NCBI GenBank assembly: GCA_977016875.1
Contig: CDRNST010000008.1
Span: 3,720,123 to 3,784,000 of the forward strand
Source: Pavona decussata
Taxonomy: Eukaryota
DNA length: 63,878 nt
Direction: 5' to 3'
Under the pieces are notes generated by a model. The model was not told where the DNA came from and made no database searches. It saw only the letters and a program-made list of their open reading frames with translations. This document shows positions 50,120 through 52,771 of the stretch, in pieces. Every line of letters begins with the position of its first letter. The first letter of the stretch is position 1. The position numbers and the translations under genes are program-made.

Positions 50120-51367
50120 TAGCCCTTGTACAAAGGAAATGAAATCAGATTAACTGGGGCTATCTCTAAAACAGGGAACGGGGAATGGAGGAATGGGGAA
50201 TGGGGAACGGGGAACGGGGAACGGGGAATCTCTAAAAGGGGGAATCTCTAAAAGGGGGAATCTCTAAAATAGGGAATCTCTAAAAGGGGGAATCTCTAAA
50301 ATAGGGAATCTCTAAAAGGGGGAATCTCTAAAATAGGGAATCTCTAAAAGGGGGAATTTCTAGAAGGGGGAATCTCTAAAAGGGGGAATCTCTAAAATAG
50401 GGAATCTCTAAAAGGGGGAATCTCTAAACGGGAGAATCTATCAACAAACTGGATAAATCTAAGAACGTTTTAGAAGTAGAGTTTTTCCTAAGAGACATTT
50501 ACAGCATTTGCTAACAACCAATAATATTATTGACAGTTGTTGTCATAATTACTAGATATATAAGATAAAAATAAATTGTTGTGGTCGCTTGCCGCAATAT
50601 CTTCGGTAGGGGTGGTCTAAAAAAATTATGCCAATCGATACCAAAGGGCCACATACAGCAAGAGAAATCGAATTTCCTACAGCATCTTACTGCAAAACGG
50701 TAAAGATAAAAGCGCAATTGAATCTCTGAATAAGCCGTAGACTCAAAATGACTGGAACTGGAACCGGGCCTGGCATCTGTAGCACGCGTCGACCATCATT
50801 AACTGGACTAGACAGACGTCTTTATGCCTGCTTAAAGCTTATCTAGTGATCAGTTCAAAAATGTGAAATGTGCGTTGTTTGTGTTGCGATTGATCCATCA
50901 GCCCTAATGGCCTTACAACGATGTCTAATAAAAAAGCCCTAACCAATTTCCTTATATGCCTTTCGAAAGTTGCAACAAACGCCCTCAATGTTTTTCAAGA
51001 AAAAAAAGGTTTCACTGGTCAAGGAAAAAATTCACCTTATCTATGATGTTATCACTCAGGTACCAGACATGCTTATCTCCCTGGGATAACGTAGGCCGGA
51101 AGCCACCCAGATTGCACATGCTAAATATGTTTTCATTGTGTCTGGCTGGTTACGTTTCATGGCGTAATTAACAAGACTAGTAATGAGAATATAAGGTTTA
51201 ATAGCGTCTGCTTTTTTATGCCAAAAAGACAAATTCTCTTAGGGTCGGGTCGCACTAAGCGAATTTTTGTATCTTCTAATTTTTGGCGGTCAAATTTTTT
51301 GGCAAACATTTTTGAACTTCCAATTTAAATGGCAGGAAATGGCTGCAAGAACGTGTTGAGATAAGAC

Positions 51368-51622
51368 ATGTCATCCCGACCTTCGGTCGACCTTTTTTCA
51401 AGTCGGTGGTTTCAGGTCAACATGGATAACAATTTCAAGTTTCCATTGGCGTTTGCCAGCAAAAGAAAAAAGCTTGAGGCGTTTGATGGGCTCCCAAAAT
51501 TTAGCTGGGACGAGATTACGAGCCAGGAAGTAATTGGTCAAGGCTCATTTGGCGCGGTGTTTATTACCCAGTATCAGACAACAAAAAAGCCTGCCGAAAC
51601 AGTGGTTGTAAAAAAGCTTTAG
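51368..51622 (+). pseudogene. Truncated protein kinase N-lobe (subdomains I-II) inside the foldback element
   Basis: FSWDEITSQEVIGQGSFGAVF...TVVVKKL is a GxGxFG loop plus a VAVK-like lysine; the ORF ends at the right TIR array. Confidence 0.75.
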
Positions 51623-52200
51623 AGATTTAAGAGATTCCCCCTTTTAGAGATTCCCTATTTTAGAGATTCCCCCTTTTAGAGATTCCCTATTTTAGAGATT
51701 CCCTATTTTAGAGATTCCCTATTTTAGAGATTCCCCCTTTTAGAGATTCCCTATTTTAGAGATTCCCCCTTTTAGAGATTCCCTATTTTAGAGATTCCCC
51801 CTTTTAGAGATTCCCTATTTTAGAGATTCCCCCTTTTAGAGATTCCCCCTTTTAGAGATTCCCTATTTTAGAGATTCCCCCTTTTAGAGATTCCCTATTT
51901 TAGAGATTCCCCCTTTTAGAGATTCCCTATTCTAGAGATTCCCCCTTTTAGAGATTCCCTATTTTAGAGATTCCCCCTTTTAGAGATTCCCTATTTTAGA
52001 GATTCCCTATTTTAGAGATTCCTCCTTTTAGATATTCCCTATTTTAGAGATTCCCCCTTTTAGAGATTCCCTATTTTAGAGATTCCCCCTTTTAGAGATT
52101 CCCTATTTTAGAGATTCCCCCTTTAAGAGATTCCCTATTTTAGAGATTCCCCCTTTTAGAGATTCCCCCTTTTAGAGATTCCCTATTTTAGAGATTCCCC
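51619..52200. repeat. 16-bp minisatellite array (TAGAGATTCCCCCTTT / TAGAGATTCCCTATTT), right TIR arm
   Basis: Directly visible; inverse of the array at about 50224-50440. Confidence 0.95.
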
Positions 52201-52771
52201 GTTCCCCGTTCCCCATTCCTCCATTCCCCGTTCCCTATTTTAGAGATAGCCGATTAACTGGCTACACGCTGTTCCTTTGGGTAATTACGAGAATTGATGA
52301 CATGATTCACTAAAGTATACAACGCAGAGCCCGGACACCATTGATTTGATAATCCCTTAAGCTGTTCCAGAACAAACAGGCATGTTTTGTTACATAACTG
52401 CGCAGGACAAATCGCTCGCGAATCATCTCATTTTTTAAAAAGGTTTTTACTTCCTCGCCAAAGCTCTGAACGAAATACTGGAAAATTGGTAGTTTTATCT
52501 TTCGTCATTGCTGTTCCAGGATTCGGACAACAATAAACAGGAACGGTGTTCTACGATATATCGATAAAATCGTATTTATCTTAACGATTGTACCCGATCG
52601 ATAAGGGAACGATTACAACCTAGGAAACAGTCCGTATCCTCTGCGTTGTTCCACGCAAAACGTCGTTACGAGTTGACAATAACAAATGAGGTCATCATGA
52701 CGGCAGCTTTTGCGATAAGTTCACCAGACCAGGAAAACGGCGATCAAAAACTACCCTGAATGGCATTTTCT

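Follow-up and report, generated by a model that had tools for sequence, protein, structure and literature searches.

How did the beginning of a protein kinase gene come to lie between the ends of a transposon that encodes no transposase? The question is raised by positions 50158-52251 of a 63,878-nt stretch of the genome of the coral Pavona decussata (contig CDRNST010000008.1, positions 3,720,123-3,784,000; hereafter the window), where a 2,094-bp element lies between perfect copies of a 10-bp target-site duplication. We conclude, at a probability of roughly 85%, that the window element is a non-autonomous, cut-and-paste Mutator-like element (MULE) and that it arose by internal deletion from a larger MULE carrying a gene for a kinase fused to a viral tegument-like deubiquitinase (VTD).

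Anatomy of the window element

The two copies of the target-site duplication, GATTAACTGG, occupy positions 50148-50157 and 52252-52261. The element starts with GGCTATCTCTAAAACAGGGAACGGGGAATGG and finishes with CCATTCCCCGTTCCCTATTTTAGAGATAGCC, the reverse complement of the start, and each of its ends consists of a 14-bp tip, then G-rich 7-bp repeats, and innermost an array of 16-bp units. On the left (plus strand), the terminal inverted repeat at 50158-50222 comprises the tip GGCTATCTCTAAAA and about eight 7-bp repeats (GGGGAAC/T). It is followed by a subterminal array at 50223-50439, in which Tandem Repeats Finder counted 13.6 copies of the 16-bp unit GGGGAATCTCTAAAAG, a reiteration of the terminal motif. 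On the right (minus strand), 36 inverted copies of the left-array unit (51625-52200) lead into a terminal inverted repeat of 7-bp repeats and tip (52194-52251). The same program placed the 7-bp repeats of the two ends at 50170-50228 and 52194-52239. The inverted arms are 221-261 nt long with 84-95% complementarity, and the tip occurs twice in the window, compared to 0.04 occurrences expected. The core of the array unit, GGGAATCTCTAAAA, matches the tip at 12 of 14 bases.

Between the arrays are a non-coding leader (50440-51421, plus strand), which in the parent element would have preceded the kinase gene, and an open reading frame of 84 codons plus a TAG stop (51368-51622, plus strand), whose last 66 codons (51422-51619) form the kinase stub. 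The list of open reading frames for the element contained no transposase. The initial annotation of this locus had described a 10-bp duplication, long modular inverted repeats, and a kinase N-terminus cut off at the right array with no transposase, and all of this was confirmed.

The stub is the start of a kinase gene

From position 51422, the frame reads MDNNFKFPLAFASKRKKLEAFDGLPKFSWDEITSQEVIGQGSFGAVFITQYQTTKKPAETVVVKKL (MDNNFKFP...IGQGSFGAVF...VVVKKL), up to a VAIK-type lysine, and its TAG falls exactly where the right array begins. A Pfam search with the stub peptide returned only a weak match to PK_Tyr_Ser-Thr (E = 0.007; 16 bits, below the cut-off of 23). The kinase identity of the stub is instead supported by alignment with full-length relatives. 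The stub is 48-50% identical to one full-length kinase, k56, with the alignment starting at residue 1, and 33% identical to the kinase of a sister element on contig C200. The N-terminal FK(F/L)P, the glycine-rich loop, and the VVVKK(L/M)L at which the stub stops are common to the stub and the full-length kinases. On this point the initial annotation needs correcting: the peptide by itself stays below the Pfam threshold, and the kinase cargo is recognised through its full-length relatives. Among the kinase core motifs, only GQGSFG and VVVKK remain and HRD, DFG, and APE are wanting; judged by its motifs, the stub could not act as a working kinase.

The stub and the 95 nt that precede it were present in every copy of the element examined, with 93-99% identity in DNA and 94-100% in peptide. 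Absence of kinase sequence from all other copies was one half of the result that would have refuted the initial annotation, and it did not occur. No family copy contained an open frame longer than 133 aa. Variants of the stub among copies comprised 6 synonymous and 13 non-synonymous changes, and the variable sites were distributed 7/5/7 over codon positions 1/2/3. The stub is evolving neutrally, as a relic that bears no sign of coding constraint.

Full-length kinases are linked to MULE transposases

The kinase k56 (L031:2589-4235, minus strand) is an intronless 549-aa open frame with a Pkinase match (E = 1e-39) and the motifs HRDLKPAN, DFG, and APE. A second, on contig C100 (L036:4005-5795), is also intronless, has 597 aa, and matches Pkinase with E = 8e-34. 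The genome contains about 30 diverged paralogues of these kinases.

We searched the genome with the 890-aa transposase of a MULE family that we call family B, which is Pfam-positive (MULE, 35 bits; cut-off 27.6), and recovered 36 diverged relatives at about 30% identity. At 10 of the 36 loci, a member of the kinase family lay 1.7-19 kb upstream on the same strand, although only 0.02 such loci are expected by chance. The control arrangements, with reverse order or on the opposite strand, were found at none of the 36. The kinase relatives of the stub are genes carried by transposons.

The C100 locus is intact. From left to right, it consists of an array of 21-bp units, the 597-aa kinase, a serine-rich 273-aa open reading frame, and a 911-aa transposase (L054:312-3044). 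The transposase carries a SWIM zinc finger (23.3 bits; Pfam cut-off 19.6) and a MULE domain (E = 3e-4), and is 28% identical to that of family B across 779 aa (E = 2e-59). Two more loci, C67 and C4, were inspected as elements with both a kinase and a transposase. At the C67 locus, a 95-bp inverted repeat brackets 12 kb. At the C4 locus, the upstream MULE is part of a neighbouring element.

The kinase is fused to a predicted deubiquitinase

To the roughly 240 residues that follow the kinase domain, Pfam gave no match, and a further Pfam search gave only marginal ones. A profile of this C-terminal domain likewise found no match among PDB sequences. A language-model search of a protein atlas, however, led to Herpes_teg_N clusters (score 0.96), and a HMMER search across the library yielded 377 relatives. 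In an alignment of 25 of these, NDGTNAC and DTH were conserved, with D183 and H185 present in at least 90%. The AlphaFold2 model of the domain had a mean predicted local distance difference test score of 90. When this model was compared to known structures with Foldseek, it matched 8ADC, 8ADB, and 8ADD (viral tegument-like deubiquitinase) and 2J7Q (cytomegalovirus M48 protease), with E values of about 1e-5 and a probability of 1.0. Since the fold search matched where sequence profiles alone were weak, we take the modelled domain to be a VTD (peptidase C76-like) with predicted Cys and Asp-x-His catalytic residues. Homologues of the kinase-VTD protein were found in Acropora, Porites, Oculina, Actinostola, the sea cucumber Holothuria, and the ribbon worm Lineus.

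A sister element carries a kinase at the position of the stub

A degenerate tip search, reading GGCTATCTTTAAAACAGGGAA(C/T)GGGGA, returned a pair of termini on contig C200 at 906019 (+) and 921477 (-), and we then read both ends. They delimit a 15,459-bp element (C200:906019-921477) with a perfect 9-bp duplication, GTTTACAGG. Its tip, GGCTATCTTTAAAACAGGGAACGGGGAA, is followed by 7-bp repeats and by 16-bp arrays of GGGAATCTTTAAAA, an arrangement shared with the window element. The ends of the two elements differ at one base in 28 and are 80-83% identical over about 200 nt. Inward from the left end, a leader of about 1.2 kb precedes a decayed kinase (...LAFKLPFITKK...GIRHGSFGVVV...DTVVVKKLLEE...HRDLKTAN...DFG...), which is placed and oriented with respect to that end just as the stub is. 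A transposase match follows at C200:911921-913006, 34% identical to a Pfam-positive MULE transposase. The C200 layout is that of the window element with the stretch between kinase codon 66 and the right array put back.

The C-to-T change that distinguishes the C200 tip recurs in every C200 array unit. Because tip and array units co-vary between the two sister lineages, this suggests that the arrays are reiterated, putative transposase-binding sites. Further termini of this CTT type occur at C53:662106 and 666473, C403:67379, C6:2370684-2373700, C8:4256138, and C45:180571.

A second lineage yielded a parallel derivative

The k56 lineage, which is different from that of the window element, has its own non-autonomous member, a 4.1-kb foldback-type element on contig C195 (L032:1222-5327; G000:C195). 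Its tip is GGCTTACGG, accompanied by GAAAC repeats and by 163-bp arrays that contain a 36-bp palindrome. The C195 element retains its left arrays, its leader, and a stub of 96 codons from the start of k56 (96-98% identical), after which it runs into an inverted array. Thus, two lineages have independently yielded a derivative that consists of a left end plus a gene stub. It is repeated internal deletion, and not random capture, that predicts this architecture.

We considered several candidates for the autonomous partner of the window family. Family B (L049, L051, L052, L053; about 7.1 kb) is young, with at least 12 transposase-bearing copies that are 97-100% identical, several of them with intact 890-aa open reading frames. 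Its ends, GGCTGTGTATAAAAGTGGGACGGGGAC, are similar to the window-element ends, but it has no kinase and makes 9-bp duplications, and we regard it as a relative. Three other MULE families, with transposases of 819 aa (L043), 624 aa (L048), and 766 aa (L050), have unrelated ends and no kinase. The longer end-bounded copies of the window family (L037-L042; 2.5-4.3 kb), when searched for a transposase or a complete kinase, yielded neither and contain only nested repeats and longer arrays.

The window family in the genome

A 28-nt tip sequence matched the genome at 160 places with at most two mismatches, while its reversed control matched at none; the 602-Mb genome therefore holds about 80 elements of the window family. 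Internal sequence of the window element, the leader included, recurs at 40 or more places with 89-97% identity. Among 26 end-bounded copies, 21 had perfect 10-bp duplications, each different, one had a duplication with a single mismatch, and one had a 9-bp duplication. When the copies were compared with each other, separately for the leader and the stub region, pairwise identity was 97.3% and 98.3%, respectively. Array lengths varied, and unit counts differed between copies in both directions (49 versus 15, 78 versus 22, and 14 versus 37). Because they do, the array asymmetry that the initial annotation had stressed, although real in the window copy, is ordinary minisatellite variation and not a trait of the family.

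Three copies on contig C241 (L009, L010, L011; G000:C241, about 499-526 kb) have a common duplication, TTTTAACAAC, and are spaced at about 12.7 kb; this trio multiplied through tandem segmental duplication and not by transposition. The window copy also has a private segment of 85 bp at 51242-51326, delimited by alignment with L002, L003, and L006, where the other copies have the 10 nt AAGTAGTACC. This segment belongs to a dispersed mini-repeat of which the genome has at least 24 further copies (86-89 bp, 90-98% identity), and could be a very short miniature inverted-repeat transposable element or a fragment of a short interspersed nuclear element.

The insertion upstream of Gbx is polymorphic

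We aligned Logan contigs from four public runs at the left junction of the insertion. Contigs from three of them (X1, X3, and X5) pass from 50157 directly to CTACACGCTGTTCCTTTGGG, which is the window sequence from 52262, and keep a single GATTAACTGG. X1 and X3 are two samples of organism A in study P1, under one species label, and X5 is a coral metagenome from study P2. The empty-site contig of X1 had no mismatches across 487 nt of flank. As contigs break at the repeat, X1, X3, and X5 show the empty allele and say nothing on the filled one. Since empty-site contigs were found in three public runs, the insertion is polymorphic, missing from some chromosomes of the species. These contigs also support the view, already taken in the initial annotation, that the insertion is recent.

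The insertion point, 50157/50158, is just upstream of Gbx, whose homeodomain exon is at about 47906 on the minus strand. Three paralogous homeobox exons with nearly identical homeodomains, at about 19491 (+), 34395 (+), and 61266 (-), surround Gbx and make up a small homeobox cluster.

Discussion

We propose that the autonomous ancestor of the window element would have consisted of a left end, a leader, a kinase-VTD gene, a gene for a SWIM-type MULE transposase, and a right end. The deletion would have started at kinase codon 66 and reached the inner edge of the right subterminal array, sparing both ends, the leader, and a 66-codon stub of the kinase. It probably occurred through abortive gap repair after excision, or else through template switching. 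At the deletion junction, ...AAGCTT is followed by TAGAGATT, which resembles the array unit TTTTAGAGATT and hints at microhomology. The resulting element of 1.6-2.1 kb, presumably unable to move alone, would then have been amplified by a related MULE transposase acting in trans. That transposase probably recognises the 14-bp tip together with its near-copies in the 16-bp arrays, and its staggered cut at re-insertion would give rise to the 10-bp, or sometimes 9-bp, target duplication.

Several observations weigh against this model. None of the end-bounded copies of the window family that were inspected contains a transposase, and we found no intact autonomous element with exactly the window-family ends; complete kinases with HRD and DFG motifs do stand beside transposases, as the initial annotation had proposed to look for, but not within such an element. 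The best full-length kinases are only 33-50% identical to the stub. Therefore, the direct parent is missing from the assembly, and the ancestry is drawn from architecture and family membership, not from a parent-offspring pair. In the C200 lineage, which is decayed, the remaining kinase copies are 87-89% identical with open frames of at most 255 aa, and BLASTN produced no alignment between the leader of the C200 element and that of the window element. Of the 160 termini from which the number of elements was estimated, only about 110 are listed. Moreover, the loci on C100 (L036 and L054; G000:C100:426200-440400) and C67 (L044 and L046; G000:C67:5232000-5246130) are 77% identical in their transposases and about 40% identical in kinase-VTD. 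It follows that the kinase module may evolve fast or pass between lineages, and exchange is possible.

An alternative is that a non-autonomous MULE took the 5′ end of a kinase gene, from the host or from another element, by template switching and was then amplified, as in Pack-MULE-type capture. The stub does abut an array, and a junction that resembles the array unit is typical of microhomology capture. Nowhere in the assembly does a parent with at least 86% identity to the stub continue into a full kinase, and a chimera is conceivable, as the ends are similar to those of family B, which lacks a kinase, and the nearest relatives of the stub are in the k56 lineage, which has different ends. 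Nonetheless, we think that capture is unlikely. The stub follows the element's own leader and begins with the start codon that belongs to the kinase gene itself, and all detectable relatives of the stub fall within the transposase-linked kinase family. A full-length sister with near-identical ends, the C200 element, has the kinase at the same position and in the same orientation, and the left-end-plus-stub architecture of the C195 element is that expected from repeated internal deletion. The initial annotation had left the choice between an animal Pack-MULE and a deletion derivative of a kinase-encoding family; we reject the former, and the linked loci and the C200 sister argue for the latter. 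To tell capture from deletion, relatives of the gene fragment should be sought within full-length elements.

Long inverted arrays of short subrepeats are a hallmark of Foldback elements. With such arrays and no internal transposase, the window element might be of the Foldback type, another non-Mutator element, or a non-mobile palindromic minisatellite that mimics a MULE. This is very unlikely, as some 80 copies are dispersed through the genome with 10-bp duplications of their own and a precise empty site exists. In addition, ends of the window type or a related one were found to enclose no transposases other than SWIM/MULE transposases. MULEs make target-site duplications of 8-11 bp (PMC6446971), a range that includes the 10 bp of the window element and the 9 bp of the C200 element, and the window element has long inverted arms. 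Autonomous MULEs encode a DDE transposase, often with a SWIM finger; MULE-type transposases are present in the C200 element and at C100, although no autonomous copy with exactly the window-family ends was found. The duplication, the end structure, and the transposases of relatives thus place in the Mutator group what the initial annotation had called MULE- or Foldback-like.

Internal deletion, then, makes the window element an ordinary kind of thing; it is the accessory gene of its lineage that we did not find described, as the searchable literature yielded no MULE in which a kinase is combined with a tegument-like deubiquitinase. Our guess is that the kinase-deubiquitinase changes ubiquitin or phospho-signalling in the host in connection with excision, repair, or silencing. 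To the coral kinase-VTD MULE clade, our results add a non-autonomous family of about 80 copies and an independent parallel derivative, and the insertion upstream of Gbx provides a concrete, testable transposon polymorphism at a coral developmental gene. It is possible, but doubtful, that a cnidarian Mutator clade maintains the kinase-deubiquitinase as a functional accessory gene, by which host signalling is manipulated to permit transposition, and that the stub family is still moving in living corals. If so, the stub family would mark ongoing transposition near developmental genes such as Gbx and would offer a coral transposition system a substrate that is ready for use.

Comparison with known systems

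The Mu1-type elements of maize are non-autonomous deletion derivatives relative to MuDR. As in these and other Mutator deletion derivatives, autonomous ends are kept, the interior is lost, transposase would be supplied in trans, and the duplication is 9-10 bp. Unlike them, the window element keeps the start of an accessory kinase-deubiquitinase gene, and its ends are made of 7-bp and 16-bp minisatellites that repeat the tip. With plant Pack-MULEs, it shares a gene fragment between the long inverted ends of a MULE; here, however, the fragment appears to come from the element lineage's own gene and not from a host gene.

Inverted ends of tandem subrepeats, variable in copy number, and 9-10-bp duplications are also found in Drosophila Foldback and in Rehavkus. 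The latter makes a 9-bp duplication and has a minisatellite before its 3′ end and a PHD finger (PMC6446971, Table 1). By contrast, the transposases of the window element's relatives have SWIM and, by Pfam, no PHD, both ends have minisatellites, and most duplications are 10 bp long. The distinction from Foldback and Rehavkus is drawn on these features.

ULP1-bearing plant MULEs carry a ubiquitin-like protease, and VTD or OTU domains are found in Helentrons (PMC9741609). In both, as in the coral clade, the transposase is accompanied by an accessory cysteine protease of the ubiquitin system, and the fold of the VTD belongs to the same family as 8ADB, 8ADC, and 2J7Q. The report on these Helentrons never mentions kinases or Mutator elements (PMC9741609). 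The coral VTD differs in being fused to a protein kinase that is predicted to be active and in lying inside a MULE. In Rhizophagus irregularis and maize, an excess of kinase genes over expectation has been reported next to MULEs (PMC8647823). Those kinases are neighbouring or captured genes, whereas the coral element itself includes a conserved kinase-VTD gene, in fixed order and orientation.

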